DNA of 64,000 bases, from the NCBI GenBank assembly GCA_963924565.1, contig OZ004607.1, positions 35,712,001 to 35,776,000 of the forward strand, given 5' to 3'. The notes beneath the pieces were generated by a model. That model was not told the origin of the DNA. It saw only the letters and a program-made list of their open reading frames with translations, and did no database searches. How positions within the stretch are numbered: the stretch's first letter is position 1; each line of letters begins with the position of its first letter. This document shows, in pieces, positions 8,056 to 45,256 of the stretch. Origin of the DNA: Ascidiella aspersa (lineage: Eukaryota). The translations under genes were made by a program, and so were the position numbers.

Positions 8056-8156
8056 TCACCTGGTGCAGATGTCGCAGCAAACCTTCATATAGTTGGAACA
8101 GAGGCCCATGTGCTTGATTTTGGCGCAGTCGCGTGAAGTGTTTACGCAAGGTCTTC
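8056..8156 (-). CDS. ADAMTSL1/3: Terminal coding exon: PLAC domain (GRPCVNTSRDCAKIKHMGLCSNYMKVCCDICTR*)
   Basis: ttgactcag| acceptor; six Cys in PLAC pattern C..C..C..CCxxC; TGA at 8058-8056. Confidence 0.93.
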
Positions 8157-11100
8157 CTGAGTCAATAAGAAAGACGACACTCTGTTAGGGTCGGTCACAA
8201 CACAGGTCTATGCATACTTAAACTGTTGCTACCAAGCATAGTAATATTAAAAAATCAGCTCGTAATATTTAAAAAATCAGAATTTTGCGATGCATGGCAG
8301 CGAATTGAACTTTAAAGGATAATTTTAAAAATGTTGTACGTTAAGTGGGTACACTATGCACGGATCTGTAATCTGCCTTGATAAAAAAGTTCAAAGACAA
8401 AAATGTCGATCTGCCATATTGATGAAGACGTTTCGATACGAGCTTGTACCATCTTCAGTTCATTAAATCCTACATCAACATTAGCTGAAGATGATACAAG
8501 CTCGAAAATATTTTTAAAAAACTAAAAAAAAAAACTCACAAAACCAAAACCATCCCATAATCTCACCTGCAAACCTGCTGGGCGCGAAAATTCGCGAGCG
8601 AGTGCACGATCGGCGGTTACAGGGCATCCGTACAGAAGGCCTACTGTTTGCCGGACACACCTTGCCAGCCGCTTGCTGCCGTCTGCCGTGGTACACGCAC
8701 CTCAGGATACGAGTGCGGAAACCGTCGCGGCCGCAAGCCTTGGAGCAGACCGACCAGGGGCTCGAGACCCACACAGGCACGCAACGGCGGTTCGGACATG
8801 ATGAATTTCTACGTGGGAGAAAATAAAGTCAATACACCAAAACGACTTAAGTCAAGCCAAGTAATTTGAAAACAGTGACTTGTGATTACAACACAGTTTT
8901 TTCGACCTACACATGCACGAAGCGACGGTTCGGACATGAATTTCTGCGTGGGAGAAAAGGGATTTATTTTAGGTCCAGCTTAAGTTATGTGTTTAGAGAA
9001 TTTTAATAAAACAAAAATTTTTTTTTCAACTCTTTTTAATTTCTTTTTAATTGTGACCTTGGTATTTACGTTGTGTTGTTTTCGAATTATATTCAAAAAA
9101 CTTGAGCGATCCAATATTAGGTCTTTAGAAACTTACAAATTTTTTCATAAAATTTTGAGGCAACCCTTTTAGATACTGCCGTTGTATTTTTGTAAAATAA
9201 AAATCATGTTGTTTTATAAGGTTGTGTATTATGTTGAGCGGTTAAAGTTGCAAGTCTGAGCGGTGAAAGTTGCAATTCGTATTTGGTATTATGCAATGCA
9301 ATTGTAATTGTTACCCAACGTTTCGGCAATCTATTCAAATCGCCTTGTTCAAGGTGAATGACATCGAACGCTCGCAATACAATTTTTCCCCATTGATTAT
9401 ATAATGAGGGCGTTTGGTGTTGTCCTCAATAAGGCTTGGTTAGTTTACAATTACAGTTACTATAGGTTTTTTTGATTAATATTATGCCTGGTACCAACAG
9501 CTATAATGGTATCCAAATTAGGAAAGCAAGTCAATCTAAATTTAAGTTATTGTCATAACAATCACTCGTTTCCGCCCGATTCTGAGCCATACCTCAACTA
9601 AAATAAGACGAAAAACGCAATGCACAGCAAGCAATTTGTTTTATGTGCAAAAATTGGCATAAATAACCAAATTTTATAATAATGCTTTATGAAAACACTT
9701 CATTTACCAAAATTTGTCTAAAAAACTAAAGTCAAGTCAAGTAGTTTGCCCCAAAAAACCCAAGTTGAGTTATTTTGCTCAAAAGACTTAAGTAGAGTCA
9801 TTTGAAAACTTAATTTCAGTCATTAACAAAAATTTTATTCACAAAAAAAACTCAAGTTAAGTCATTTTCCCAAAAGCCTTAAGTCTTGTCAATTGATTAA
9901 AAAACAGTGACTTAAGTATGCTTGACTTTTAAGAAACACAGACATTAACTTAAATCATTACAACAGTGCCAAAATGCTATAAGCGTGTGCTGAGGAATTC
10001 GCCTGCAAGGGCTCAATGACAACAATGTGCTTCTGCTTCTCGAGCTCTGTCGTCAAAAGGTAATTCCCCTGATGACGTACCTTGTGGGCCGGGGCTGTCC
10101 CTTGCATGCGGACCTCGGCAGTTCCTTGGTTCCATCGCCCGACATACAGTGAAGTCGCCTCAGGCGTCGACCAACTCCGCGTCCAATGCACTTCTTGCTG
10201 CACTGTAACACAAATACACAACGTCACCCTTATGGTACACGACATAAAGCCACCAGTCACTGAATGTGTGTTGGGTACGAAAACTACACGGTTTTCCCCC
10301 TCGGGTGAAAAGGGTCGGAGATCAGTATTACCGTTGGAATTTACAATTGCGGGCAGGATAACAAAACATTCGAACTTTATTAGCTTAATTATTGTTACAC
10401 GAAGGACGTCTAAATAACTATATGCAATAACAAGTGTAGTGGGCTTTAAGAAATGTCGTATATTTACAACCACAAAAAATTAAAATTGCATTCGACAAAA
10501 TTCTAAATGTACTTATTTTTCAGGTCGTGGTGTGGTGACCTCTGAAACGTCTTTATCAAGATGAAGTCAATTTAATCGACCTTTTTGGCTATGAGACTCA
10601 TCAATTATTATCAATCCTTTATAATGTTGTAAAAATCCAAATGAAATTTAAGAAAAATGTCATTAAGCTTACCCTTCTCCACGGGCCGGGTTTCCACCAC
10701 GGACAAGAACCGCTGAAGCAAGGCTCCACTCGACTTGGCTGTTCGCTGATTCCTTGACACTCCTCGTTAGCGACCTCTCGCGCCCCGCCGTCCGACATCA
10801 GCACGACGCAAGGTGTCGCCCTAGTGCGGGTCCCGTTGCCGCAAGTCGCTGAACACGATTCCCAGCGACCGGTTATGAATCTGTATACGAGAAAAATAAA
10901 AAGCTGTGTTTAAAAGACTGAGTCGTTATACTCAAGTAAGATTGCAATTATTTGGCTGTTCAGAAGAATTTAGAAAGATTGATATGCTAGGTGTTTTTTT
11001 GCATCTGGTTTGTATGTTGCTCGTTTTTTAACTGTATAATATACAACCGGCGTAAATTTCAGCGTTATGTTTATTTATATTATATAGATAGATACGGCTT

Positions 11101-17100: not shown

Positions 17101-20100
17101 ATAATGTAAAATGACTGTGAACATTAGAAAACATTCCTTAGCTAGTGAGGACCAAAAAATCTTTCAATAAGCAATGTTTAATAATTATTTTTTGAATTGA
17201 AAGGAATTTCTGATTATACTAGATGGTTGTGATTATAAGGCAACATTATTGGAGTAGAAACGGCCAAAAAATGCAATCTTAGAAATTAGATTAAAAAAAA
17301 TAATTAAGAAGTTTCCTTGTCGGCTTTTTAACCATGAACAAGCAAGGATTTATACATAAGAGATTGTCGTAAAAAACAAATCAAGTTTATCACGAAAAGT
17401 AACTTTAAACGCTATTAAATGTATATGAAGTTAATTGTCATGGGTGAAAAAAAAATATTGTTAATAATTGATATCGAATTTAGGGTAGAACTTAATAACA
17501 AAATGGTTTTAAAATCGAATTGCAATGCCTATTAATGTGAGATCCTAAGAAAAATTTATTTCGTCCAAAACTTTTCAAATTTTTTTGCAAACAATAACAC
17601 CAGCAGACCTACCTAAGGTTGCTGTCCGGCAACTTGATCTCATCCTTGTACCACTCAATGGCCGGCGGGGGATTCCCCGTGGCCTCGCACAGGATGTCGA
17701 CCCGGGCCGCCCCGACCAGGACCAGGTTGCCCCCCACGTAGGCGCTGACCTCGGTCCCCATCTGGAAGGGGGGGAGGGTCGACTGGCGGATTATTGACGG
17801 CGCGTCTGTGAGGATCTTGTCAGGGATTTGGTTGTCTGTGACAAAGTTTGGCGGAAATTATAACTTGATTTTTTTTAATTAAACAAATAATTCGTTATTT
17901 GTACGTCTTCACGCATGAATTAATAATACGCCTGATCAATTTAATTTAATTTTCAACTGTTTTATTTGACGCTTGCACTCAAACAATAAGTGGTTTAACC
18001 AGGTAAAATTGGGTTATTTCCGGTTTGGTTTGTAAGTGATATCAGTCATCAAACATAACAGCCCTGAGTTACCAAATTTTTGGGCTATGTACATTAAAAC
18101 TATTGAAAGCATGCCTAAGAAAAAAAGAATAAAGATTTGACTGTCACTAGTCTTTAAAGCAAGTGTTTTTTAGGCAAACGTATAAGACTTTACGAAAAAG
18201 CAAAAAAACGTGTTTTAGGCTTGACGCCACTGTGCAACAAGGTTAATAAAACCTTTTTAATTTCTGACACTTTTATCGTACACAAAAATTGTATCAAGGA
18301 GTTAACTAATAAAGCACAAAATGGAACTTTAAAGAATTTTAACTATCTCTAGGCACACTTGAAGGTTAAAAATGGGACCCCAGAGTTCCGCGGCACCCCG
18401 GATGAGAACACTAACGTACAGGATAAGAAAACTAGAAGAAATAGTCTAGAGGCGCTATAGGTAGAGACCGTGGTGATGAGGACTTACTTTGAGGAATGCG
18501 GAAGAGCGCTTCCGGTGATCCGGTCTGCTCCAGATTCGACTCTATTTCGAACAGGTCGGAGTCGGAGGTCTCGTTTTCCTCTTGAAGCTTGGTTTGAAAC
18601 TGAACAAGGAATCTCTCGATCTGAATAACATGCGTTTTAAATTGCCTTCGTTGCCAAGCGTGCCGTGCAGTTCGGCCAAAAGCAGCCTTGTCATCGAACA
18701 TTAAGCAACAAAAATGCAAAAACCAGTGTTGTATGCAAAACATTTTGAAACGAACCAAGTCCCAGTTAAGTCATTCGCAAAATAATTGAAGTCCAAGTAG
18801 AGTTGCGTGCAAAAAACAGCATAGTGTAAAATTTCGATTTTTTTTTATAATTTGCGAAAAACAGCATAAAATTCCATTTAAAGTCATTTTCATCACAAGT
18901 CAAGTTATCGCATCAGCATTAAAAGTTTGTTAAAAAAAATGCTCAACTTGTCCGAACATGAGCGGTATAAAAATTAGCAAACAACAATGTAACATTAAAC
19001 AAATAAATTGTTGAAAAAATGAAAAAACATCTGAAATAAAAAAAATAACAGCCTTTTTACACAACCAACGATTTAGGGAGACTGCAAACTTACAAAAATC
19101 CATATATCCAGAAGGATAGGGATATTTGGGCCTTAATTCTGAGCCGTGGTTGCTCAACAAAAAACTGAAAAAGTGTTTGAAATAGCATATATATGTCTTG
19201 AAAAAGTTGAAAGTTTCGGCATCTGCAAGCTGTGCCTAAAACCGCTTTGTTTTAATTTTAAAGCAGGGCCACAGATTAATAAGACATAACAGGACAAAGC
19301 AAGTTCCGCACTTAGCACAGCGGCAGAAGTTTGGCTGGCATTCACAGCGCTAAAAAGCCAAAAAACGTGGGCGCAGACGTAGCTTTGCTTTGTGCAGAGA
19401 TGTCCGACATTTGCCATTTTCTACTTTAAATTGCTGTTGTTAACCTACTATGTTTTGAGAAATTTATCTTTAGAAGTAGTATTGCCGCTTAGAAAAGAAA
19501 ACCATGGCTATGATATACATTGGTAATAGTTTAGTTACCTCAAGTGGTTAACCGAATATTACTTGATAAATTTGTGTTTTAAGATAAATATCGCTAGTTG
19601 GGTTGCAAATCATGTCTGAAATTCCGATATTACTTTGGTATCGGATTGGCACAGGTATACAACCCTAGTATCGGACAAATACCGATACTAGCACTTGGCA
19701 GCGGATATCAGGTCCGCTCAGATATATAATCGGACATCCCTGTGGCGTATGGGTAAAGCAGGGGTTCTTAAACTGGGGTTTAGGGACCCCTTGGGGGTAT
19801 GTGACAAGTTTAAGGGGGTCCATGAAGGCTTAATTCAAATATTAGTGTATATTTGAAAAGTAATCAAATTTTCAAAGAAAAGTGTTTAATAAAAAATAAA
19901 ATGTTTTTGCACTCTATGCATTTAGACTCTATTTCACATTTTTTATACCGGAAACAGCAGATTTCTGAAGTCTATTTACATTGTGACGTAAATTTATGAC
20001 GTCATCTTTTAAAATTCTAGCATACCCTTGTCCATGCGAAGCAAAATTTTTTTAAGGGTTCCGCGGTAAAAAAAGTTTAGGAACCCCCTCATCAGATAAA

Positions 20101-23100
20101 GCAAGCGAGCGAGCGAAGAACTTTTCCTAACCTGTGAATCTGTCGAGAACTTGTAGTTGGGAAGTACGGCGCGGGTTTGAATCGGCGGCACGTCGTGTTG
20201 TTCCACGAGAAACGGGCCATGGTCGATGGGTTTGGGAGCGTACGAGACCACCTTTTGCTGGTCCAGGCTTAGGTTCTGCGGTGCAGTCGGCTGTAGCCTG
20301 GTGCTGGTTTCGCGCGCGCTGTCAAGTTTGTTGCCGTTGAAGATGCTCAGGATATCGTCGATTTTATGAAGGTCGGCGACTTTGTGGATCTTGTTCAAGT
20401 TGTTGTCGATGTTGTCGATTTGGTTGATCTCGAAATTGTTGTTGTTGTTGTTATTATTATTTCTGTGGTTGTTATTGTTGTTGTTGTTGTTGTTTCTGTG
20501 GTTGTTTTTGTCGTTTTTTCGAGGGTTGGAAACGTCGAAGACGACGAGCGGGTTTTGGAAGCTGAGAATCTGAGAAGCGCCTGAAAAAGGTCGCAAAAGT
20601 ATTGTTTCAAAAGGGCCAAAGAAAACGTTGCCTGTTAAGTTCGCATATGCTTTCTGTCCTGCAAAATTTGTTTAAACAAACCAAAGGCAATCGACTCTCA
20701 ACAAACACACTTTGATTTTCCCTAAAATTCGCGTGCAATCATTTTTGCCTTTTTTGGAAGTACTTTGTCCATGCGATTACGGCAAATTTAATCATGGCCA
20801 AGTATTGCGCTGTTTTTCCTAGTTTTCCGAATCTTTAAAAAATGGTTTGCACAGGCCACATTGAAAAACTACATCTATAACAGCACTTTAGTGGATATTC
20901 ATACTTAATTATCAACATGAGTTTGTCCTGTAAACTAGACAACATTGAGTCCATGTGTCAACGTAAAGCGTAATTATAGAATTTTGTTTTTTTTTAGCTG
21001 TTTTCTCAAAACTTCTCCATAACAAACAAACAAACTAAACAAACGTTAGGCCCTATAGTCAATATACACCTTAACTTACCGTCAGTATCTTCAGTAATAA
21101 AAACAAGGGCGCTGGCGCTCGTGGGTCCAGCAAGGCAAGTGTAGTTGCCAGAGTCCGACTCGCCAGCCTTTAGAATGCGTACTGCCCGGTCGGACTTTCG
21201 CAGCAGTCTGCGTCTGGACAAGGTCATGGGTCGGCCCTCGTACAACCACTCGATAGTACCGTGTCTGAACCTGTGTGTGTGTATTGGTATTAGGAATGTA
21301 TAGGAAAGTAAAAAAACGCCTGTTTTTTAAATTACGTTAGATAATGTATGCACTGGTTTACACCAGGGCTGCGGAGTCGTAGTCGGACTCGGGACTCGAC
21401 CGAGTCGTTTTTTTTTGCAGGAATCGAACTCAGGACTTAAGTAAGACTACGTAAGAGTCCCGAGTCCGACGAGCAGTATTAAATTCAATAGCAATGCGCC
21501 GACAATCTGCTAAGGTTGGAATGCTATATGTTTTGCAGGAACGAATTTCGGGCGGATGAGATATTATATGGCATCCCTATGAGTGGATTGCTGTATATCC
21601 ACCATACTTTAGTTATGTAAATGAGTGGGATATTTTCAAAAGGTTTAAACGGAGTGCTCAAACTTTTTAAGCTTGCTGCACACTAAAAAAATCTTAAATA
21701 TTTCGTGGCACACTTTTAACAAAGAAACGAGAGCTTTCACCTGTTCACTTTGCAGCGAATAACGACTGTCGTGTTTGGGAAAACGAAGGCTTGCGCTCCA
21801 ACGTCGACCCTCACCACCGGCTGGTAATCAGTCTGGATGAAGGGAATCTTCGTTTTCACGATCACAGGGGTTCGAGTTCTTCCAGCGAAAAGACCGGACG
21901 GCCGCCGTATCGGTGACGAAATTCGGCGGTTTGATGAAGCTGACGAAAAAAAATCGAAGTTTTCTCGAGCCGAACAAAGAAGGAAATATCGCTACAGACT
22001 TAAAACGTGTTTTCCGACGTTTTTCTTTGCGGTTGATAACGTGCGGGTGAAATATGCCATGTTTTTCGTCTACTTAACACAAATCGTTATTTGTCGCAGT
22101 CTAGGGCTCTTGTTATTAGATTAAGTATTCACAATTTGCATAGATTTCAGTAAATATTTACCAGGTCGTGTCAAGAATGATTTTATCAACTGATTGAGGT
22201 CGAAAGTGCTTTTGGACAGATGTTAAAGTTTTAAATAATAAAAAAACAGTTGTGTCATATTCGTTTACCGATGATATACTTTTGAATCGTAATGTGGAGA
22301 AATTTCGCTATTACCACACAAAACCAGGTTTAATTACTCCCATATTAGCAGCCAACACAAATTGTTTAATTTTTTGGATCTAAAATCACCTAATAAAGAC
22401 GTCATTTATCGAAATGGAAGAAAGAGTCGAAAAAGATAAATGACTGGCTTTAATTAAGACAGGAGTCGAAATAATATTGCTGAAAGCACTGAGCTTGTAT
22501 ACAAGTCGTCAGTTTTCGCAAAAAAAACTAGTCGCAGCTATTTGGCAAGGTGAAACCATATGTTTTTTTTTTCGATACTGATAACAGATGTTTTAGAAAA
22601 AGTATCGTGACACGACCTGATGCCAAATAACATCATCACTACGCTCAAACAAAAAAAAGATAAAATTGAAAGGTTCAAACGTAGTTTTTTTAGCTTGGTA
22701 CGCCGAATTTGCTTAAAGTTAGGATGCTTGGTTACTATTACAAAAGGTGATGGTAATCCAATTACGGTTAAATTCGACTCACGGCATTATCCAATTGACG
22801 TCATTACTATGTTCAAACAAAAGAACAAAAAAAAGGTTGGTTCGCCGTTTTGCTTAAAGTGAGGATTCCTATTTACTTTGAAAAAGTTGATGTTAATCCA
22901 AATAAGGAATAAATTCCACTCACGGCATCGTGGCAGTTTACATCGTTTTCGGCCGACTGGGCGACGGAGTGCCCGGCACGCCATCTTGTTGACACGCTCC
23001 GGTCTTGATTTGCCTGGCCTCTGCATAATGCACGACACAACACGACGCATAAACTCCCGGCCGCACCTCTTCTTGCACTGCAACGTGTAATGAATTGTCT

Positions 23101-29100: not shown

Positions 29101-32100
29101 CGGCTTTTTGCTGCAGTATTCGCGAGATACGGCCTCAACCCGACCGGTTCCCAGCATACGTTGGCAGGTCAGGGTGCGATTTTGATAGCCACAAGGTCCG
29201 TCGCACTGGTAGGCAAAAAGGAAAAACTTTGTAGGGCGTGAAAAATAAAGGGGTTTTAGATATGGAATTCTAAAAAAATAGGATCAGAACCAATGCAGGT
29301 AAAATGCTAACACTGGAGTCCTGTAGTTACTGACCCGCTTTCAAATAATTTATTCTTTCAGTGCGAACTTAACAGCCTTTGTCATCTTGTATTTTTTAGT
29401 TGAATTATTGCTTATAATCGGATGAGTTTACCAATTTTAATGGTTTAATCGTTTTATTCTTTTATTACGGGTTTGACTTGGAGATGACTTGCTCTTTAAT
29501 GACTTGACTGCTGAAACGTGACTTGGGCAACTGACGACTTGGGCTGGGACTTGCTCTATTTTAGAAAGACTTGACTTGGACTTAAGTTATTTTACAAATG
29601 ACTTGACTGGGATCAAACTTATTTCAAAAAGACTGTTGCACATAATTAAAATGGTCTCACCTCTTCCCAGGGTGAGGCTACCCATTCGGGCTCGCATGGG
29701 ACTTGGGGGCACACATTGGTCGACGGGGGCTTGGGCAGGGGGCACATCATCTTGGGCATAATCTCCCATGGTTCGCTCTCCAAGTCGTCCGAGTCCAGGT
29801 TCTCCGGCTTTTTCCTGCACACCACGCTTCTCTCCTGGACTCCTCTTCCGCATGTGACGCTGCAATCTCCCCACGCTCCCAGCACCCACCTAGCGGAAAG
29901 AAGAAAAATGAGAGGAGTTATGTTTCTATGTTGTCGCGGGTTGGAGGCTTGTGGATTTTAAGGCTTATATGTGCAGTGTAAGTATTGTTGGCAAAAACAA
30001 CGGCATATATATGTAGAATGAAGTGTCAAATTGACTGGGGAATTTGTTATATTGAATCAAAAAAATAGAGGCATCCCTATATGTGTTTAAATGAGGTTTT
30101 ACATTCTGTGAGGAATGTGTTGTTTATCAAAGCAATCGAGCGTATAATTGCAAATACCATTACTAGAGCTTTGCCCTGATAAATCTCGCGCTGCCCATTT
30201 GGGCGCAAATTACTTCCGCCCCATTTCGGAAGCGCAATCCAAACTAAAAAAAGAAAGGATTAAAACAAAGAGGTACATCGATACCAAAAAAAGCGGTTCA
30301 GCTTCCTTGCTGATAAATCTCTTTCAGTCGATTTGGGCGCAAATACTTCCATCCCATTACGGAAGCGCAATACAAACGAGGAAGCGAAAGGATTAAAAAG
30401 AAAAACGGTATAAGCACGATAACTACAAAAATGAGGTTTAGGGTTTTCTTGTTTATGAATTCGTTTTGTTTTTGGGGTGTTCGTGGTAAAGTTTGGCAAA
30501 ATGCAAATTGGAATCGCGCCTCAGCTTTGCAAAAGCAATAAGTTAATGGGGAGGCTGTTTTTTTTCGGAGGCATTTTAAACCTTGTTTTGTCGCCGCCTC
30601 CGCTCGACTCGTTCGTCAACCACAAAATTTCAATAGGTCGAATTTGGAGGCGGCGCTAAGCGTGGAACGGGATTACGAAAATTAACCGTTGGGCGCGCGT
30701 TAATTGGCAATGAGCGACGGTTCGTTAAACGCCCGAGGCAGGAAAACAGTCCTAATTACAACTGAGGGTTCAGAACAGCGGCGGGGTGAAGTGGAAATTA
30801 GGTTATTCGTCGAAAAGCTTGTCCCTTAGTCAGGGCCTTAATGATCCTGTAGGCCTAAGGCTGTTTACTACAGAAGGGCCTAATTAAACAGCCTAAATGA
30901 AACGATGTATTTATCTACTCACACACAAGCCACATATTGACTCGACTTTTTCATTGATTATCAAGAAAAAACTGTGCTGTATACTGTAACTGGATTTGTA
31001 TCACTATCAGCCTTGTAAAAACCTTTAAAAAATTAGGGACGAATTTTTCCAGGGCCCAAGGCGTATAGCCTTAGTAGCCCAATGCCAAACACTGCGATGC
31101 TTGTCCTCGCTCAGAATTTCTTGCACTCGAAAAAGCAAACTGGCAAAAACAATGCCGGCGCTTATCTCCGCGCGAGCACAAAGCAAACTTTAAAGAGACG
31201 CGACAATAAACAAGGACTCGAAAGAATGCGGCTCCCGATGCGAAAATGCGCGGAATGCGGCGGCGAAAACAAGGGCCCCGTACATCAGGTCGAAAATCTG
31301 CCGGAAAAAAGCAAACAAAGTCCCGCGGGAGGCCGAAACGACGACCCTTCGATGAGTGGTAATTAGGAAGCCGTCGCCACCGCTGTGGGGTCTAACTACA
31401 AAGGGGGCCCATTGTCGTTTCACCATTGTTCCCCGGGCGCTAGGTCCCCGCCCCCAACTTGCGCTACCGTGGCTGGCATTAATCTGGGCACGTCGGAATG
31501 TCGCGCGTTTTGAGGGGTTTGCGTTCGCGATGAAAAGCAAAGACCACCGTCGTGCTACTGTCGAAGACCTCCCACTCCCAAACAATCAGATTCTTGTGGA
31601 AAAAAAGTATTTGGCGGCCCTGGAAATTAAGCTTGAAGTATCACGGCAATAGTAACTGTCAAATAACTGAAATACAGCGTCTTCACATAATAAGTCCTGT
31701 TTCATAGAACAATGAAAGCAAATTTTTGTTTTGTTTTTACATTAATTTGTAATTTCCCCATCGCCTTCCTCCTTTAAACAGGTAAAACGTAAGAATGTAA
31801 ACCTTTGTTTTACTGCTGCTCTGTTTTTCGACTGACGCATGAAAAGAATTCCCTTGGCAGACGTTCAAAGTCCCCGGTGGTTTTGCCCCACGTATCGGTC
31901 AGGAAACCGCATCTGAGGGGTCACGCGGGGTAAATTTGGGGCCGTCTGGGGCGTGTTTTTACAGTGCGTCAGACGGCATCAAAGATATCAGCTCGGTCGA
32001 GAGATAATTTGGGGGAAAATCTTTGATCGTTTTGTTTAGGAGTGCGCGAAATTACACTTTAAGTTGGGTAAATCGACTAGTCATGTTTATGGGGTTTTCA

Positions 32101-38100: not shown

Positions 38101-40862
38101 ATCATTATTGCCCTTGGAAAATTACCCCAACCATTGTCGCCCTAAGACTTAGCAAGTTCCAACCGAATGCATTGGCAAATCTATTAGATCGTTTACTCGA
38201 AAACGATAGCTAATGACGTCATTGTTTCGTTACAGATCACACGAAGCTTGCGATTTCGATTGCACATAGCACATAGGCTTTTATTTAGTTTTTGTCTGAC
38301 CACTACAGTAGGCAGGGCTACAAAGCGAATATTTACTGAAGTACATTTTAAAATCTAAATGGTGATTTTCAACATTTTAAATCTTAATTGGCCCAATATT
38401 AACACAATGAAACTGCAAGCCCCTTCTATAAATGTATCTCATAAAATTAAAATAAGCCACGACAAAACAAATCAGGTTGTTGGTAACGATGAAGAACCAA
38501 ACAGAAGACGAAGTCCTTATAACACAGCACTTATGTTATTTTTAGCACGTTCTAAAAAGGTGGACAATTTGGATTTTTCGCCAAATACGTATTATGATAA
38601 ACTATCAAGCACAAAATCGGTTTCTAGCCCGAATTGGTCTGCACTAAAGGTTCGGGCCAAAAATTAAGTCGAAGCAGCATTCTTCAGCCGCGTTCGGTAC
38701 GGCGCCAACAGTGACCAGGGTTGGGGGGTTTTGGGAGGGGCCAGGGACGCGTAGGCGCGACGTCTCAAACGGGGACAAACAGATTTTCGGCTCAGGGCCC
38801 GCTGGTGGCGCCTGGGGCGGAAAATTGGGGGAGGGGCGATCCCGTAAACAAACAAGATCAGCTGCAGGTGTGTCCAGCGCTGTTACTGAAACAAAATCGA
38901 CAGCGGGAAAGGTAAGAGGGAAGGGTCGGTTTACGTTTCGCGGTTTAAAGGCGTAAGCCGGTAATGAGGTGCCAGAACTCGGCAGGGTTGCGTCATTTTT
39001 TTTGAAGTCCACCGAACGGACAACACTCGAGTTTTATTGTCGTAAGGTGCGATTTTTGTGGGAACTGTGAAACCGGTTCTTTTAGGTTCAATTTTGGGGT
39101 AAGCAGATTTTTCCAGAGTTGTACGTTTGTAAGACTTAACTTTGTGTTATAACGTTCATGAAAAACATCCATTAGGTATTGTTCCAAAAATACATCCGTT
39201 TTGAGGTATTATATCGGGTGGCACTCAGGACCGAATTAAGAATACTGTAGGCCCTATACTCACACACAAGGCACATTCATTCGTTTTTAAGCAAAAACTG
39301 TTCTGAATCTGTATCACTATCAGCCTTACGTCAATTTAACCTTAAAATTTTTTTTCCCAGGGCTTAAGGCTATAGCCTCAGTAGCCTAATGGTTAATCCG
39401 GCACTGGTGGCATTATAAAGCCACAAAGCCGTTTAAATACAAATTTTCGATTTTCCTCAAAGGCAGCAGTGCCGTGAAACCTCTAATGTTGTCACAATCA
39501 CCGGCACCACAATCGAGCACGCATTAAACAGCAATAGGGGCGTGTACCCACGTCGAACGCCAAACGCCGCAAAATTCACGTCACAAGCAAACCGCGAAGG
39601 AGCAGCGCCCTTCGACCGCAAAGTTGTCAAAGTGGCCGCAAACCTGGCAGCTCCTTGTTGCCTTGTCGTGCCCAAAGCGCCCATAAGCAGCTTCAGCTGG
39701 GGCTAGTTGGTTTGGCGTGCGATTGACGCAAAACGCGGACTATAGGACAAGCAATCGTTTTTGGATCACTTTTGATGCTTCCTTACCTGTTTGGGATAGC
39801 GTCGGACGTTTCAGCGACGCGAAAGAGTAGGAGAAAGATGGAGAGGCGCACCAGAAAGACTAAAACGCCTGGGAAGGGAGCCTTTTTGCTCCGGCTCCTC
39901 TTTAGCGCAACTTCTCGACGCTTCTTGTCTCTTAGCGAGCCACGCTCGTCAAGGAAGCCTACGACTTCCGGCCGTTGGCGTTGTACTACGCCCGCTGGAT
40001 CACTACAAAGGATACTACTACTGCTGCTTGTGACAAGTATTGTGCGGTTGCTGGGTGCGGGCGTCTTAGGCCGGTATTCGCACGGTTGCGATGAGAAGCG
40101 TTCATAACGCGGCCCAACGCATGACGCAGTGCCAGTGATGCCGCGTTCGGTAATGTCGTCACCACTGCCGCTGCGGTCTGAGCTTGCCCTGAGCTCCAAA
40201 CCACATCTAGACCGGGTGTCTCGAGAGGCGACAAGACCGCAGCTATGATCGCGCGCCAAGTGTACGGCCTGAGGAATTGGCGCGGCGCTTTTCATCGAAA
40301 TCTGACGTTGACGAATCGACGTTCGTCCGTGCATCGACCAAAGCCGGCCTTCCTTCATTTCCGCTTCATTAAATCGCCCGGCGGATATCTGACGTTGAGG
40401 GATCGGCTCCGAGTCGGGGCGGCGCCAAAGCTGAGCAGTGAACTTCAATCCAGCACCCTTGGACGAATCTCGGCGGGCGAGCGGCGGACGACAGCCGAGT
40501 CCGTTTCGAGTGCGCCCAAGATCACTTAAAAGCCCTTGACTTGGCGTTAGATTGCCGTCCGAGTGACGGCGGGTCCTGGTCTTACATGTGCCTGTTGATT
40601 TTGCCCTGATCCGCCTCTTAAAGCCACCACGCGAGTCTGGCCTGCTTTCGCGCCGTTGGCGGGCAATATCGCGTCGTTTTGCCGGGGCTTGCGTCGTCAG
40701 CGATGCCAAAAATGTAAGAAGCCGCTGGAGGTTTGGCTCGCTCGGAAGTGTACAGTGGTTTGGTGGTTCTTTAGTGTGCTGGGGTGGGGAGTACGGTGTT
40801 TTGACGTTTTCAGTATTGCTGCCGCAGCGGCATGCAGGCTGCGCGCCTGCTTCAAAGCCCAT
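8056..40862 (-). CDS. ADAMTSL1/3: ADAMTS-like protein (Punctin/MADD-4 family), spliced model: join(40862-39787,29889-29661,29205-29029,23077-22924,21939-21741,21270-21080,20580-20132,18620-18488,17835-17613,16783-16524,15795-15613,14837-14703,12682-12467,11844-11661,10880-10673,10202-10081,8808-8567,8156-8056); 4482 nt, ~1493 aa
   Basis: All junctions are GT-AG and phase-consistent. Domain order 3xTSR-Ig-linker-3xIg-4xTSR-PLAC with no metalloprotease domain. The pre-Ig segment PVIVKTKIPFIQ...VDVGAQAFVFPNTTVVIRCKVNRF resembles the ADAMTSL1/3 'YIQ...VGG.AYLLP.T.VV.RCP.RR' segment as I recall it. The first exon is less certain than the other 17. Confidence 0.9.
8422..8463 (-). ncRNA. Minimal type I hammerhead ribozyme motif (Penelope-like element type)
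   Basis: AUGAA-CUGAAGA-U-GGUAC(aagcuc)GUAUC-GAAAC-GUC^-UUCAU: intact core, 5-bp stems I and II, palindromic ACGU stem III. A broken inverted copy lies at 8485-8507. Confidence 0.7.
8567..8808 (-). CDS. ADAMTSL1/3: Exon: last TSR (NSSCPNRRCVPVWVSSPWSVCSKACGRDGFRTRILRC...)
   Basis: ttttctcccacgtag| acceptor, G|gtgaga donor, 242 nt, phase 2 to 1. Confidence 0.94.
9312..9358 (-). repeat. Degenerate hammerhead-like/Penelope remnant
   Basis: CUUGAACAA-GGCGAU(uugaauag)AUUGCC-GAAACGUU: stem II and GAAAC intact, CUGANGA core mutated. Confidence 0.4.
9725..9935. repeat. 'aagtcaagtc/gacttgactt' repeat family; also ~8826-8895, 18755-18905, 23085-23345, 29470-29640, 32255-32340
   Basis: Recurrent aagtc pentamers with shared aaaacagtgactt. 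Confidence 0.65.
10081..10202 (-). CDS. ADAMTSL1/3: Exon: TSR (CSKKCIGRGVGRRLRRLHCMSGDGTKELPRSACKGQPRPTR)
   Basis: tttgtgttacag| acceptor, AG|gtacgt donor, 122 nt, phase 0 to 2. Confidence 0.93.
10673..10880 (-). CDS. ADAMTSL1/3: Exon: TSR (FITGRWESCSATCGNGTRTR...CFSGSCPWWKPGPWRR)
   Basis: tttttctcgtatacag| acceptor, AGG|gtaagc donor, 208 nt, phase 2 to 0. Confidence 0.95.
11661..11844 (-). CDS. ADAMTSL1/3: Exon: TSR (VYSYAVGNFSECSSECGPSGFKRRMLRC...PCNRVDCPPR)
   Basis: tttcccatctatttag| acceptor, AG|gtaatc donor, 184 nt, phase 1 to 2. Confidence 0.93.
12467..12682 (-). CDS. ADAMTSL1/3: Exon: Ig4 (GCPVTGFPEPEVVWYFNG...VGVYTCTGTNEGG...)
   Basis: cccctctctag| acceptor, G|gtaagc donor, 216 nt; I-set motifs. 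Confidence 0.95.
14703..14837 (-). CDS. ADAMTSL1/3: Exon: linker and start of Ig4 (DPPHETNQ...VKANSSVMM)
   Basis: tttttctcctcag| acceptor, G|gtaaga donor, 135 nt, phase 1 to 1. Confidence 0.88.
15004..15354. repeat. 'ccgata/tatcgg' MITE family; other copies ~19615-19742, ~34065-34183, ~57030-57062
   Basis: Shared gtatcggatcggcaccgatacc..ctagtatcgg and ...ggacatc(c/t)ct ends. Confidence 0.7.
15613..15795 (-). CDS. ADAMTSL1/3: Exon: end of Ig3 (AYPEPYVIWRKD...DQGLFACEATNPSGSDYQASTLVLI)
   Basis: ttttccaacag| acceptor, G|gtgaga donor, 183 nt. Confidence 0.95.
16116..16327. mobile_element. MITE with ~30-bp imperfect TIRs, PIF/Harbinger-like ends
   Basis: tttacactacagctgggtgagctg ... aactcagcgcagctgtagtgtaaatggaccc. 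Confidence 0.6.
16524..16783 (-). CDS. ADAMTSL1/3: Exon: end of Ig2 and start of Ig3 (DNSLRI...DAGVYTCVARN...VTIRCPAN)
   Basis: gttgctag| acceptor, G|gtgaga donor, 260 nt, phase 2 to 1. Confidence 0.95.
16850..17300. repeat. Degenerate minisatellite-like array; related pieces at ~14360-14560 and ~15420-15520
   Basis: Recurring ggaattt(t/c)cgataat..ctgtgaacattagac..cattcctt..gaccaaaaaa. Confidence 0.55.
17613..17835 (-). CDS. ADAMTSL1/3: Exon: first half of Ig2 (...VDILCEATGNPPPAIEWYKDEIKLPDSNLR)
   Basis: ctttgtcacag| acceptor, AG|gtaggt donor, 223 nt; CxAxGxPxPxIxW I-set motif. Confidence 0.93.
18488..18620 (-). CDS. ADAMTSL1/3: Exon: acidic linker (IERFLVQFQTKLQEENETSDSDLFEIESNLEQTGSPEALFRIPQ)
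   Basis: ttattcag| acceptor (in-frame alternative starting at 18599), A|gtaagt donor; supplies the needed phase 0 to 1 bridge. Confidence 0.8.
19759..20089. mobile_element. hAT-type MITE
   Basis: TIR caggggttcttaaact/agtttaggaaccccct; TSD not preserved. Confidence 0.7.
20132..20580 (-). CDS. ADAMTSL1/3: Exon: low-complexity Asn-rich linker
   Basis: ctttttcag| acceptor, CAG|gttagg donor, 449 nt open frame, phase 1 to 0 fits both neighbours. Confidence 0.85.
20436..20512 (-). repeat. Coding (AAC)n microsatellite, two NHR-N9 blocks
   Basis: Plus-strand (gtt)n runs; translates KNNHRNNNNNNNNNHRNNNNNNNNNF. Confidence 0.9.
21080..21270 (-). CDS. ADAMTSL1/3: Exon: second half of Ig1 (FRHGTIEWLYEG...ESDSGNYTCLAG...)
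   Basis: acacag| acceptor, G|gtaagt donor, 191 nt; Ig core Trp and DxGxYxC motif. Confidence 0.93.
21741..21939 (-). CDS. ADAMTSL1/3: Exon: linker and first half of Ig1 (...PFIQTDYQPVVRVDVGAQAFVFPNTTVVIRCKVNR)
   Basis: ttttttttcgtcag| acceptor, AG|gtgaaa donor, 199 nt, phase 1 to 2. Confidence 0.93.
22924..23077 (-). CDS. ADAMTSL1/3: Exon: TSR (CKKRCGREFMRRVVSCIMQ...CRALRRPVGRKRCKLPRC)
   Basis: cacgttgcag| acceptor, C|gtgagt donor, 154 nt, phase 0 to 1. Confidence 0.93.
25805..25823 (-). promoter_or_regulatory. Consensus CTCF-binding motif
   Basis: Minus strand TAGCCACTAGGGGGCGCTA matches the CCAC(C/T)AGGGGGCGC core. Confidence 0.6.
26146..26351. mobile_element. Inverted repeat (96-bp arms, 14-nt spacer) with a hammerhead-like core on each strand; Penelope-like pLTR remnant
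   Basis: Arms 26146-26241 and 26256-26351 with 3 mismatches; CUGA(A/U)GA-U-GGCA..UGCC-GAAACGUU on both strands. Confidence 0.7.
27197..27390. repeat. Fold-back (MITE-like) inverted repeat, ~85-bp imperfect arms
   Basis: aaaagtggaatatcg..gtcatatacttaaatgtgataa..ggccaaagccgaagcag pairs with ctgcttcggatttggcc..ttatcacatttaagtatatgac.gatattccactttt. Confidence 0.85.
29029..29205 (-). CDS. ADAMTSL1/3: Exon: TSR (CDGPCGYQNRTLTCQRMLGTGRVEAVSREYCSKKPPVRRRRCLMTRKCRPRYVTRKWQP)
   Basis: ttttgcctaccag| acceptor, CCG|gtatgt donor, 177 nt, phase 0 to 0; six-Cys TSR spacing. Confidence 0.92.
29661..29889 (-). CDS. ADAMTSL1/3: Exon: TSR (R-WVLGAWGDCSVTCGRGVQERSVVC...CPQVPCEPEWVASPWEE)
   Basis: ctttccgctag| acceptor, GAG|gtgaga donor, 229 nt, phase 2 to 0; WxxxxWxxCSxTCGxG motif. 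Confidence 0.95.
30830..31094 (+). mobile_element. Diverged copy of the 39226-39406 MITE family
   Basis: Shared tactcacacacaag, tgtatcactatcagcctt, tatagcct.agtagcc.aatg. Confidence 0.7.
37075..37374 (+). mobile_element. hAT-type MITE (agggtgccgc subrepeats); related fragments at ~18350-18412 and ~26630-26732
   Basis: cagtagttctcaaccggggtgccgcggcac...ggctgggaaacact; three gggtgccgc motifs. Confidence 0.65.
39226..39406. mobile_element. hAT-type MITE with 8-bp TSD
   Basis: TIR caggaccgaattaa/ttaatccggcactg; TSD gtggcact/gtggcatt; related copy at ~30830-31094. Confidence 0.8.
39787..40862 (-). CDS. ADAMTSL1/3: Putative alternative first coding exon (358 aa + 2 nt): long basic/Ser-rich N-terminus, then a hydrophobic signal/anchor segment, ending ...SDAIPNR
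   Basis: Longest ORF in the window. Start context aaagATGG with an in-frame TAA upstream. Ends AAC AG|gtaagg (phase 2), matching the phase-2 acceptor at 29889 (AG+G = Arg). Hydrophobic APFPGVLVFLVRLSIFLLLFRVA at 39881-39813. Confidence 0.7.
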
Positions 40863-43800
40863 CTTTGCAATTTTGTGGAGCGTTTCTTGCTTTAAGCAGA
40901 CTTGAACTCGCCCTATTGATTAACCATTGCATAAAATCAAAAAACGAATTCTGACGAAAGGTCAAACAGAGGTTTAAAAGGTTAAGGTTGCCACTCGGTG
41001 GTTGGCGCGAAATCAGTCTTGTTAATATCCAACCACAGAAAATAACATAACACCAACGAAATCTGCCAAAAGTAAGCCAAAATGTTTTACACAAAGATTT
41101 CTGACAAAAATTGCAGAAAGCTGCTAAAGCTATAAACCAGTCTAGATGTTATCTAATCGCTTGGCAACATTTAAAAAAAACACACTCATACGTTAATACA
41201 TTACACATTTAAACACTTCCATATATATCGTGCTGGAAAAGTCAACATTCGGCCCCTATGGTCACTTAAGACGACAACCTTAAAAAAGCGCAAGGGGACA
41301 CCCTAAAATGTTCAGCCCTCTTTGCAGCATGTCAAGCGTGCCAATGTACATAGCGAAAAACATCCTAAGGGGCTAAGGTTACGGTAGCAGTACGCCTATA
41401 CTTGGAACTAAACCTCGCAAACACGGCGAAGACAGTAGGCTGATTTTCACGGGAACTGCTTAAGCGAGTGACTCTTTGTGTTTAACAAGGCAAACTAACG
41501 GGAACGCTTCTAAGGAGGCCGTCATTATACGCGACCAGTGGTCACTTTTCGAGCGGTCAGTAAGCAACCGGATACCAGAATTGTTCTGGTCAGAAGTGGC
41601 CCCCGAGTCGAGTTTCAACTTGGCACGGAGCCAGGACTGTAAGGCGACCCCCTGTGGACAGAACGAGCCCCTTTTGGAATTCAACGTTTGCCTAATGATC
41701 GAGCCACGTTGCAATGTTTGCTTAGCATACGCCTATCCGAAATGGCCGTTGTTGCGCTGACCACTGACCACACAGACCATCGTGGCTGAACAAATTGAGG
41801 GCCAAAATAACTCGCCGACTGAAATAACTGGTCAACAAACGCAGCTTGGTCACCTAGGCAGGATTGCCATTTATTAGTTGAAATTCCATTAAGCTGTTTG
41901 CCCGTGACTTGCTATGTATGTTTTAATCCATTTCGAAATTTGGCATTTGATGAAAACGCTGCAATTCAGATCATAAGCCAAAGTAAATTTTGCGTTCATT
42001 GAACGCAGTTTTGTGTTGTCTTGGTATTAGTTTAAAACATCCCATTGCGTTATAATAAAAGTAGAAGGTTCGAACTTACAATACAGACAATAATGTCGTG
42101 GCCAAGTTAACATGCATGAAAGCACGAAGCTTCAATTTTATGTTGTTCGTCCTCAAAGACAAATAAAGTTCGCTCTAAAGATATTATTTGGGACTTGGGT
42201 TGGAGAACATCTGGTGAATACAGCCGCATTAGTTCCTTCTCACTAAAGGCATTCCTTATTTGGCCCGGACAAAACCACCTTTTTTTAATAGCAACTACAA
42301 AACCGGGCGGCCCCTTTTTCAACTTGCTACCTCGGGCATGACGTAAGCATGCTTTGAAGCCTAGATTAGTTCCACATGTGGTTCCGTCGGTCGCGCAAGA
42401 CAAGCTGTACAAATAAGACCCCGCCACCCCGTTGTAGTAACAGCAACAATAGCAAACTATCTGCGATGCCGCGGTTAGCCGCAAACAACATTATTCCAAG
42501 TTACAAATTGGCGAATAATTAGAAGGCTTTGTAGGCAGTCACGTGCAGTTAAGCACGTTAAGGCCGCTTTAAGACGCCTGTATTAAGCAGTCAACAAGCC
42601 CAGCGTTTGTATCCACGCTGGTGAAATAGAGTTCGAGCGTTTAGCGCATTTCCTCAATTTAATCCCTGATAAAGTATTTGGGCTAAAACCCCTGCTGAAC
42701 AACGTTAAATCTAAACATCCGCGTATGGAAAAATATCCCGAGTTTACATGAGGACTCATACCAAGAAGCTTACCGCAAGATAACGCATAAATCCGGACTC
42801 TTTATGTTAAAAACTATTCCAATTCCTACTAAACTCCGAATATATGTGCAAACGTTGCGAAATGACCAAACTATAGCTATAGCTATTTATATCGAAATTT
42901 ATCCATAAAGGGTATTACTTTAGTAAATCGAACTCCTATACTCGTTGCAAGTAAAATTCAGCTCAATTTAATACTCAATGTTCTGACAGCTTACTTTAGT
43001 AAAAATGTTACATAAAACTCGAGTTCGCCTGAACACTCAAAACACCCAAGTTTTCCTGAAGCCCCAAATCCCCAAACACGTTTCAGCTGACTTTCAAATT
43101 GCCGCAAAAACACAATATATACACCATTTCGCCCGAAACAATATATACTCAATTTCGCCCGAATCCAGCCTCAGTCAATCAATGCCTCTTTTGTCAAGCG
43201 GTCTTCATTATAGCCAGTCCTGCGTGGAGCGGGGTGAGTACTGAGTAGTTTGGACGTCAGGCAGCACTCCAGTGTACGTGAGGTCGTCGTGACGGCCAGT
43301 GGGGTATTTTTGTCACGTCCACTGCTTTTTCCCATGCCAGATAATTGCTTCGTTTCCACGACCCACTTCGCTTTGCTACGGAAATAGCCGAACGCAGAGG
43401 TAGAAATGCGACAGGGGCGAAACGTTAAAGCGGAACATATCGAGCCATGTGGGTGGGTTTAACGTTTTATATTATCGCGTGGTTGTTTTTCAGCGCAAAG
43501 CTAGGGCTAATGGCTGAAAACGACAGATTTTCTTGGTCTTAATACATTCCGAGACCTAAAGTTCGGCCCGTGCATTGACCCTGTAAAACGTGGTCTGTTA
43601 AAGCGTTTATGAAAACGACAAAGTCGTACCTTTGTAAAACCCTATCTGGGTGTAAATCTATAGGGATCTGATCTGGGAGCTGTTTGCTTTAAAACCGTTA
43701 AAAGCCTGTTTAAAACTTAATCTTTGGACGAAGCTTGCTTGGGTGTAGATTATATAGTTAGAAGAGTGTTATTATAGTAAGGTTTCTCGCAAAAGTGGCA

Positions 43801-45256
43801 TATGCTCTGAACCATATCGAGCCATTCGTGGTTTCTGTCTAGAGCAGTGCTTCTCAACTTTCTATGAGTGGTCCCAAACCTCTTGTTCACGTTTTTGAAA
43901 CGAGAAATCAACGCAACAATGGCCCAACTTCTGTTTTAAAACGTGAATTGCTCTGCCAAATTTGCCACATAGGCGACATTCTCAAGCACGTGGAAACACA
44001 CGGTGGAAAAAATTCCAAAACTCCGGAAATTCTATAGCCCGTGTTTGCCTAGAGATCACGCGAAATCCGCATAACCCCTTAATCATGGGGCATATTGAGG
44101 CACTGCGGCGTGTCATAACAGTTATTGCAGCGAAGCGCGCGGTTAGGTGGGGGTCGGAGGGTTAAGTTGGGGTCGCAACATAAATGATGTCATCTATTTG
44201 CTCAGTAAACGCGCTTTTCGCCACTTTTAGCGCGAAATAGAGGGTATTTGGATGGTGTGCGGTTTTTATGAAGGGAGCTAAGTTTAAAAAGGGGCGGCGA
44301 AAACTGGATACGTGACCCAGAACAATGGGGCCTTTATGTGGGGCCTATGGGGGCCTCGATTTGCCCAAACAGCACAACACGTGCGTGATGGGAGTCCCCG
44401 ACAGGGCGAAAGAAAGTTGATGTTATTGTTATTTTAGCTTCCTGCTGCTGGTACTGAGTGAAAACTTGTTTTTAAATCATTGAACCTATATACAGGATGT
44501 TATTAAGTTCGCGTCGGAAATAACTTGTAATAAAACTAACCAAAACCAGCTCCTCTGGTAATTGTAGTTGTTAACCAACATTTTTTTTTCGCCTTCTTAG
44601 GCGGGAATGACATCGAAGGCTCGTAGTAATAAAACACTACACATAGTTTAGTGAAAAAAAACAGCGATAAAAAGAAAAAAAAAACAGCGATAAAAAGAAA
44701 AAAAACTCTTTTTTCAGTTTCCATTGTTTATATTTCACAATTTGTTTTCTGGACGCCGATTTTTTTTCATAGCTGACGCGATCGACATTGCAAAGGGCTA
44801 ATTTTTGCCTTCTGTAAACGCGGGAGGCATTCTTTAACCGATTTCCGGAAAGGTTCAATTTTCCCGTATTAAAATCGCCGGCGCTCCACACAGATAGGGA
44901 ATTCCAGCGCGCGTAATAACGTGCCATTAACATGTCAGCGCTCCAATAAGGCGAGCGTGTAATTGCGGCGTGTTGTGGAAATGCCGGCTGCCAGCCGCTG
45001 CGAGCAAACTTTCGCTAATTAACAGCTCTTAAGGACTCTGGCGTCTCTTGCTCGCGGCCCCACAGCTTTGATCGTTCCTTTTAAGGCGAGCGATAAGTAG
45101 CGCCAGCAATTGTGGCCGGAACTGTTTGAGCCTATTTTAGTTCGAATGCTGCGGCGTGTCGAGTAACGGGTCAGGGCCAGTTTGCCAGAAGGGAAGCGAA
45201 TGTCAACGGCACGCAATAGTCAATGAAATAAATGATACACACACATGTGTTTAACC

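Follow-up and report, generated by a model that had tools for sequence, protein, structure and literature searches.

We analyzed a 64-kb window of the genome of the ascidian Ascidiella aspersa (contig OZ004607.1, positions 35,712,001 to 35,776,000 of the forward strand), across which a Punctin/ADAMTSL gene of more than 100 kb runs on the minus strand. Of this host gene, just the 3′ half falls within the window, and its long form starts beyond it; about 144 kb around the gene were read in total, including 70 kb more past the window end. Coordinates are those of the window unless they carry an L-number, which refers to adjoining DNA. The element under study is a minus-strand open reading frame (ORF) of 359 residues in an intron of this gene, which had been picked out as a possible type II membrane-tethered ADAMTSL with a basic, disordered tail before a signal-anchor (the original prediction). 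The frame looks like genuine coding sequence, and we propose that it may be the coding part of an alternative first exon (39787–40862) that supplies a short Punctin isoform with an internal signal sequence.

Within the window, the host gene encodes three TSRs (exons at about 29.9, 29.2, and 23.0 kb), four Ig/I-set domains (21.9–12.4 kb), three more ADAMTS-type TSRs (11.8, 10.8, and 8.7 kb), and a PLAC-like end at 8059–8184 that scores under the cut-off (15.2 versus 26.4 bits). When each exon was searched on its own, PF19030 was over its cut-off in seven exons of the gene, and PF07679 (I-set) matched with E-values down to 4e-11. Beyond the window lie TSR1 at about 107.0 kb (L004:2993-3112, PF00090, E = 4e-6), an ADAMTS Cys-rich domain (ADAMTS_CR_3) divided between two exons, at about 102.3 and 89.7 kb, whose scores of 20.7 and 18.4 bits narrowly miss the 21-bit cut-off, and further TSRs at 87–78.7 kb. 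The two Cys-rich exons are 12.5 kb apart (locus C1:35.79-35.82 Mb; L003 and L006), and the TSR1 and Cys-rich module as a whole sits 50–67 kb upstream of the studied exon, outside the window. The spacer family PF05986 matched at eight places in the genome, none of them at the host locus; the spacer of this gene may be divergent or cut into small exons. No protease motif turned up across the 144 kb read, where no search aimed at one was made. With its ADAMTS-type TSRs, Ig (I-set) domains, and PLAC-like end, the host gene has the C-terminal features of an ADAMTSL/Punctin. Two further sequences at this end of the locus are recorded here. Between the first and second Ig domains, the minus strand carries a 220-codon open frame (20012–20671) with two poly-Asn runs (NNNNNNNNHRNNNNNNNNN), which has no convincing Pfam match and may be a low-complexity linker exon of the Punctin. 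Downstream of the gene, a long microsatellite with a 12-nucleotide (nt) period (L009:1554-1893, equivalent to window −8446 to −8107) translates to (SLTH)n whichever minus-strand frame is read.

The last upstream constitutive exon (L005:4833-4680, equivalent to window 78833-78680) ends ACA AG/GTGAGT in phase 2, and the next constitutive exon, which encodes one TSR and the start of the next (29661–29889, minus strand; PF19030, E = 7.6e-11), begins at a phase-2 acceptor (...ccgctag/G). The intron between them measures 48.8 kb and separates the N-terminal ADAMTS-like half of the gene from the half composed of TSR, Ig, TSR, and PLAC-like domains. We found two candidate first exons within it. One is the studied exon; the other, at L002:2303-2128 on the minus strand, about 2.1 kb past the window end and 26 kb upstream of the studied exon, is a conventional signal-peptide first exon with its own ATG (MLLSRRNTKTLWITIVASQLLLVCAEA...), which ends ATG CA/GTAAGT, again in phase 2. 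All three phase-2 donors (constitutive, conventional, and studied) fit the acceptor at 29889. Because the conventional exon lies in the same intron and ends in the same phase, secretion of a short isoform would be independent of the studied exon, and by way of the fit to 29889 the gene may also produce a secreted short Punctin of the classical kind. The same intron also contains a 265-codon minus-strand open frame (L002:6535-7329), the second longest in the 144 kb, with no R-x-x-S motif and no Pfam family.

The frame under study is open for 378 codons (40919–39786), and its first ATG, at 40862, begins the 359-residue ORF. The coding part of the candidate exon extends over 1076 nt (39787–40862, minus strand), from M1 to N358 plus the two nucleotides (AG) of a split Arg codon, so that its 3′ end is in phase 2. 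Over the same 1134 nt, there are no stop codons in this frame and 11 to 19 in each of the other five; in 3000 dinucleotide-preserving shuffles, the longest frame averaged 144 codons and never exceeded 352, short of the 378 seen here. No other open frame of the 144-kb locus is as long (runner-up 265 codons). The exon has an exon-like GC content of 57.6%, compared with about 40% for the background. DNA and protein searches of the 308.6-Mb genome returned the self-match alone, and a sequence that is single copy at both levels is not a repeat, a transposon, or a member of a gene family. About 400 nt downstream of the exon lies a short high-copy repeat (39277–39413), at which word depth in the DNA runs climbs from about 60 to roughly 1360 and numerous contigs break.

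The ORF has an unusually high content of R-x-x-S motifs. The original prediction described a basic disordered tail ahead of a hydrophobic stretch, and the tail is indeed basic and predicted to be disordered: it holds 62 Lys and Arg versus 30 Asp and Glu (net charge +32), and an AlphaFold single-sequence model gave a predicted local distance difference test score (pLDDT) below 50 for 294 of the 359 residues. Within residues 1–326, we counted 16 R-x-x-S sites (39885–40829; Arg at residues 12, 70, 74, 86, 98, 130, 131, 148, 157, 173, 186, 204, 225, 230, 255, and 322) where 5.4 were expected, and none of 200,000 residue shuffles reached 16. Shuffling inside 30-residue blocks gave the same outcome for R-x-x-[ST]. 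The excess is specific in spacing, in frame, and in nucleotide distance. Arg followed by Ser or Thr at gaps of 0, 1, 3, 4, 5, or 6 residues, and every reversed order, occurred at or below expectation; the other five frames, which are equally rich in Arg and Ser, gave z-scores of −0.8 to +0.7; and 40 other open frames of the 144-kb locus showed no comparable excess. In the DNA itself, pairs in which a Ser-type triplet comes 9 nt after an Arg-type triplet number 16, 2, and 2 in the three frames, and the 9-nt distance in frame 0 alone stands out. The sites employ five Arg codons and five Ser codons, and with codons so varied the excess is not a hidden DNA repeat. It is greatest in the first half of the tail (residues 1–168, 9 observed versus 2.0 expected, P = 1e-5) and less marked in the second (residues 169–326, 7 versus 3.5, P = 0.03).

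The individual motifs named in the original prediction are all in the translation, at residues 98 (RRHS), 130 (RRDS), 225 (RASS), 156 and 185 (QRQIS), and 153 and 195 (PIPQ). Both QRQIS copies derive from an internal duplication (40297–40405, minus strand), a 22-nt direct repeat whose copies (40297–40318 and 40384–40405) are 86% identical and lie 87 nt apart. Enrichment of PKA/CaMKII-type sites is seen for the R-x-x-S class (16 versus 5.4), whereas strict PKA-type RR-x-[ST] sites, taken alone, were not significantly enriched in the tail (3 versus 1.2 expected, P = 0.11). An excess of this kind over composition is what would be expected of a multi-site substrate of basophilic kinases (PKA, CaMKII, or PKD type); phosphorylation itself is a prediction. 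Among the lines of evidence here, the excess also speaks most strongly for translation of the frame from its first Met.

We take M1 (40860–40862) as the probable start of translation, since the R-x-x-S excess is strongest before the internal Met residues and the first half of the tail can be translated from M1 alone. The in-frame Met residues are 1, 169, 177, and 190 and no others, and M1 has a strong Kozak context, the best among them (aaagATGg, with A at −3 and G at +4). Between M1 and the in-frame TAA at 40922–40920 there is an open leader of 19 codons (40863–40919), in which a T-rich tract is followed by AG (40914–40913), with no ATG between this AG and M1. Upstream ATGs occur 65, 70, 186 ... 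386 nt before M1, and the nearest two (65 and 70) are out of frame. Ascidians are an animal group known for spliced-leader trans-splicing, and we speculate that the T-rich tract and AG are a candidate 3′ splice or trans-splice acceptor, at which the mature mRNA could begin. The sequence at the N-terminus (MGFEAGAQPACR...) lacks hydrophobic character, so an isoform derived from this exon would have no short N-terminal cleavable signal peptide. N-myristoylation of the MG... terminus was considered and rejected: Phe follows the Gly, and the PROSITE pattern excludes Phe at this position.

At its 3′ end, the exon reads AAC AG/GTAAGG, a 5′ splice donor (GTAAGG, 39781–39786; context CAG/GTAAGG) in phase 2, and the TAA that closes the ORF (39785–39783) falls inside the donor. 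The exon therefore ends at 39787, with G39786 and T39785 beginning the intron, a small correction to the original prediction. Only 6 of the 3193 minus-strand stop trinucleotides in the window (about 0.2%) have the context AGGTRAG. A stop inside such a sequence is thus rare by chance, but it always occurs in a phase-2 exon with a GTRAG donor, which argues that the exon is spliced. Joining AG to the G at 29889 would make an Arg codon, the frame would continue into WVLGAWGDCSVTCGRG, and the predicted junction reads ...SDAIPN-R-WVLGAWGDCSVTCG. Only three phase-2 acceptors between 39785 and 29800 combine a pyrimidine tract with 45 or more open codons, and the TSR exon is the best of them, with the best tract and the longest frame. 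We also considered the studied frame as a cassette exon entered from the phase-2 upstream donors and rejected this: acceptors near the start of the frame are in phase 0 or 1, and a hydrophobic span would be senseless inside an already secreted protein.

The evidence that the exon is joined to the Punctin TSR exon at 29889 is indirect, and two alternative destinations have to be weighed here. The exon could be real and translated from M1 but belong to a separate gene nested in the Punctin intron, spliced to private downstream exons, its helix then being the span of an unrelated orphan protein. The coding evidence and the consensus donor would fit such a gene equally well, no RNA reads tie the exon to the TSR exon, and the other two phase-2 acceptors, at 38811 and 36482, also open onto frames. 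But these two are outranked by the TSR exon in tract and frame length, and nothing between 29958 and 39785 showed a Pfam domain or another mark of coding sequence. The acceptor at 38811, which is the nearest, sits in a block with a frameshifting 1-nt indel polymorphism that is unlikely to be coding. Finally, a basic n-region, an apolar core, and an S-x-A sequence ending four residues before the donor are what one expects ahead of disulfide-rich TSRs. On balance, we regard a nested gene as unlikely. The block in question (38600–39050), a second GC-rich one, reaches 66% GC and contains a 129-codon frame that is open on the minus strand; another individual lacks 1 nt of it at 38922 and 3 nt at 39034, because of which the block is probably not coding.

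Alternatively, the stop codon could be used as such, either in an unspliced stand-alone nested gene or through intron retention. The product would be a 359-residue tail-anchored protein with an R-x-x-S-bearing cytosolic domain, a C-terminal helix, and an 11-residue luminal tail, inserted posttranslationally. The helix does end 9 to 11 residues before the stop, in the style of tail-anchored proteins; the GC-rich block continues for about 300 nt past the stop, as a 3′ untranslated region might; and an AATAAA lies about 750 nt downstream (39038–39033). Set against these features are a stop that falls in a perfect donor consensus (about 0.2% of window stops), a phase that matches the next host exon (a 1-in-3 chance), a density of single-nucleotide polymorphisms (SNPs) and indels that is highest just past the stop, and the lack of a poly(A) signal within about 700 nt of it. 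We consider this outcome very unlikely, and we take splicing to the TSR exon at 29889 as the preferred reading in what follows.

Just before the donor, the ORF contains its only strongly hydrophobic stretch, APFPGVLVFLVRLSIFLLLFRVA (residues 328–350; 39813–39881, minus strand), a candidate signal-anchor or signal-peptide h-region. It had been placed some 330 residues from the start and more than 130 after the last Met, and this description is accurate: the stretch begins at residue 328, 138 residues past the last Met, and its mean Kyte–Doolittle hydropathy over 19 residues is 2.32 versus 1.18 for the next best in the ORF. A hydrophobic cluster of such strength appeared in 3 of 10,000 residue shuffles (P = 3e-4). 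AlphaFold gave a single confident helix at residues 331–355 (pLDDT about 90), and the hydrophobic core of the helix spans G332–A350. Immediately upstream is the basic cluster RDKKRREVALKRSRSKK (residues 311–327; 39882–39932), with 10 Lys or Arg and 2 Asp or Glu, a positive flank on the N-terminal side, while the C-terminal flank (RVAETSDAIPNR) has a net charge of 0. The positive-inside rule is established, and an N-terminus-cytosolic insertion is expected because ten Lys/Arg residues lie within 17 just upstream and the C-terminal flank is neutral. The charge bias thus favors an N-terminus in the cytosol, in keeping with the topology of the original prediction, and a signal that emerged after 330 residues could not carry the N-terminus across the membrane.

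Whether the segment would stay in the membrane is a separate matter. Two of its residues, 339 and 348, are Arg; its apolar residues number only about 15 and are interrupted by R339, and next to it is a good S-x-A site. Summed roughly on the Hessa scale, the segment comes to about +0.7 kcal/mol. Following the core is a polar c-region, ETSDA (residues 351–355; 39798–39812), and as read from the sequence a candidate signal-peptidase site comes after A355 (S at −3, A at −1), with IPN beyond it. The segment therefore resembles a cleavable signal at least as well as a stable anchor.

With classical n-, h-, and c-regions in place, the segment might instead belong to an ordinary signal peptide. An upstream mini-exon with an ATG would be spliced to an internal acceptor (...gctcccttcccag/GC, at about 39866) to give M...VLVFLVRLSIFLLLFRVAETSDA/IP, and the long frame would be incidental. 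A good pyrimidine-rich acceptor does lie at the start of the hydrophobic run. But no upstream mini-exon was identified, the open frame and the R-x-x-S excess upstream of this acceptor would go unexplained, and the 70 codons before the segment hold no in-frame ATG and only a weak ACG near-cognate. We judge this arrangement extremely unlikely. The related idea of a translation start just before the hydrophobic segment, which the original prediction itself had named among its grounds for refutation, finds no ATG or strong near-cognate there in the exon. As near-cognate starts for it, we examined and rejected the weak ACG, which is codon 267, and CTG and GTG codons within the run itself.

Several observations weigh against the view that the frame is a functional first exon with an internal signal. 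HMMER found no match to the ORF among 1.84 billion representative proteins, among which an isoform could still sit within a cluster represented by a long form; a metagenome contig scan gave 482 pattern matches, none confirmed; a protein search of the species' own genome found no paralogue; and no Pfam family was found in the ORF or in neighboring open frames. Thus these protein and contig collections yielded no relative in which the motifs could be compared, a check that the original prediction had proposed. The amino acid composition of the ORF correlates with a random translation of its base composition (r = 0.93). In codon-usage log-odds, the studied frame is the highest of three, yet its score is negative; the training set (771 codons from the TSR, Ig, and Cys-rich exons of the host gene) consisted of Cys-rich folded domains and the target is a disordered region. 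The GC-rich block does not stop at the donor but continues beyond it, as described above. The hydrophobic segment overlaps a C/T-rich tract, which yields hydrophobic residues in one frame of three, and the conventional Met-led signal-peptide exon lies in the same intron. The species' one RNA run gave 0 reads over 38301–44000, with about 6% of the run read, which is too little for a test. The other three sequencing runs are DNA-like; in run X3, the loose ends at 41923 and 42109 have no match within the window and do not mark splice sites.

Polymorphism in a second individual (run X2, DNA) is of mixed import. The exon carries 11 SNPs (1.0%), a lower density than the roughly 1.7% of 3.9 kb of flanking sequence (one-sided P = 0.07), and it is free of indels, while 1-, 2-, 3-, and 7-nt indels occur just outside. 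Seven of the SNPs are nonsynonymous and four are synonymous, and the ratio of nonsynonymous to synonymous polymorphism (pN/pS) of 0.59 is near neutral and not significantly below 1, a further point on the unfavorable side. One SNP, R204C, removes an R-x-x-S site. Any constraint on the exon is thus weak, which fits a fast-evolving disordered region and equally a young or dispensable one.

Taken at their strongest, these points would make the frame a nonfunctional one, arisen by chance or in decay within a GC-rich intronic island or a noncoding leader, with the hydrophobic segment as a translated pyrimidine tract. In line with this are the 0 RNA reads, the absence of relatives in the searches above, a pN/pS indistinguishable from 1 with SNPs that show no preference for third codon positions, the near-random composition, and the negative codon score. 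But a nonfunctional frame needs two independent coincidences, a 378-codon open frame (0 of 3000 shuffles) and a specific R-x-x-S excess (0 of 200,000), and it leaves aside both the stop within a consensus donor and an exon free of indels between flanks that have them. We find this explanation quite unlikely. More generally, a spacing-specific motif excess can flag an orphan disordered exon as coding where homology and codon statistics fail.

Our preferred reading, to which we give about an even chance, is that the stretch serves as an alternative first exon, giving a short, MADD-4B-like Punctin an internal signal sequence and a cytosolic N-terminus. Translation would begin at M1 (40862) and produce a basic, disordered tail of about 330 residues, dense in basophilic-kinase-type R-x-x-S sites. 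After the Lys/Arg cluster, the single hydrophobic helix would then serve as an internal signal sequence, because it leaves the ribosome long after the N-terminus, and would insert with the N-terminus in the cytosol. The phase-2 splice onto the TSR exon at 29889 would place the TSR, Ig, TSR, and PLAC-like part in the lumen of the endoplasmic reticulum and later outside the cell. Left uncut, the segment would tether the short Punctin to the membrane in type II orientation; if signal peptidase cut it after SDA(355), a secreted short Punctin and an R-x-x-S-rich, C-terminally anchored cytosolic piece would result. Either isoform would lack the TSR1, Cys-rich, and spacer module, as the exon splices downstream of it. 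The product is thus predicted to be a short Punctin isoform of an ADAMTSL gene, composed of TSR, Ig, TSR, and PLAC-like domains, and not a complete ADAMTSL. Accepted in this form, the ADAMTSL/Punctin identity of the original prediction holds for the host gene and for the donor in phase with its TSR exon, and it fails for the product with respect to the missing module. Overall, the original observation is confirmed and the R-x-x-S excess makes the case stronger, while the interpretation is partly supported and probably best recast as an alternative first exon with an internal signal sequence.

Unlikely, in our view, is the further step in which delivery, retention, or release of a type II surface Punctin is set by multi-site phosphorylation of a 330-residue cytosolic tail, or in which a cleavage variant gives two products. 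If it were true, a control that acts in trans in C. elegans, where UNC-43/CaMKII favors MADD-4B secretion (PMC10015018), would sit in a single polypeptide. The cleavage variant would be equally unprecedented for the family, with one exon giving rise to a secreted short Punctin and a membrane-anchored, phospho-regulated fragment. A chordate Punctin born as a membrane protein with a kinase-addressable tail would represent a new coupling of signaling to matrix or synapse, in sea squirts, which are tractable. Should RNA data show no such transcript, the stretch would be merely an unexplained intronic open frame.

Vertebrate ADAMTSL1 and ADAMTSL3 (punctin-1 and punctin-2) are secreted via short N-terminal signal peptides. 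The host gene shares with them a TSR1, ADAMTS-type TSRs, and Ig (I-set) domains, together with a candidate ADAMTS Cys-rich domain and a PLAC-like end, whereas the proposed isoform differs in being without the TSR1, Cys-rich, and spacer module. To our knowledge, there is no membrane-anchored form of ADAMTSL1 or ADAMTSL3, and all characterized Punctin/ADAMTSL proteins are secreted matrix proteins. Nor do we know of an ADAMTSL whose signal is internal or whose cytosolic tail is long, and a targeted full-text literature search returned no report of one. Tail-anchored membrane proteins with basophilic-kinase sites beside the anchor do exist, phospholamban being an example. Like these, an unspliced or cut product of the exon would be a cytosolic R-x-x-S polypeptide with a C-terminal helix and a very short luminal end; unlike them, it has a far longer disordered tail, and with no sequence similarity the resemblance is architectural only.

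Among ascidians, a TSR ectodomain on a signal anchor has a precedent in the Tast astacin-like metalloproteases, which are predicted to have type II topology: they lack a signal peptide, their one span is N-terminal, and their TSRs are extracellular (PMC11673157). The span of HrTast2c, at residues 21–43, is near the N-terminus (PMC11673157). Tast proteins differ from the studied exon in their short cytosolic tail, with no 330-residue tail reported, and in the presence of a protease domain, and they are unrelated to ADAMTSL.

The closest parallel is found in C. elegans. madd-4 is an orthologue of ADAMTSL1/3, and by the count of the same study Ciona has four ADAMTSL genes (PMC10499240). The madd-4 locus produces two isoforms by alternative promoter usage, the short one, MADD-4B, arising from an internal promoter as a secreted organizer of GABA synapses (PMC11385328), and secretion of this synapse organizer is promoted by UNC-43/CaMKII (PMC10015018). 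Unlike MADD-4B, the studied exon has no N-terminal signal peptide and places a tail of about 330 residues rich in R-x-x-S before its internal signal; with no detectable relatives, orthology of the exons cannot be claimed. Like MADD-4B, the proposed short isoform would start internally within a long Punctin/ADAMTSL gene and keep the C-terminal TSR/Ig part only. In parallel to madd-4, the ascidian gene has two candidate internal phase-2 first exons before its TSR/Ig/TSR/PLAC-like half.

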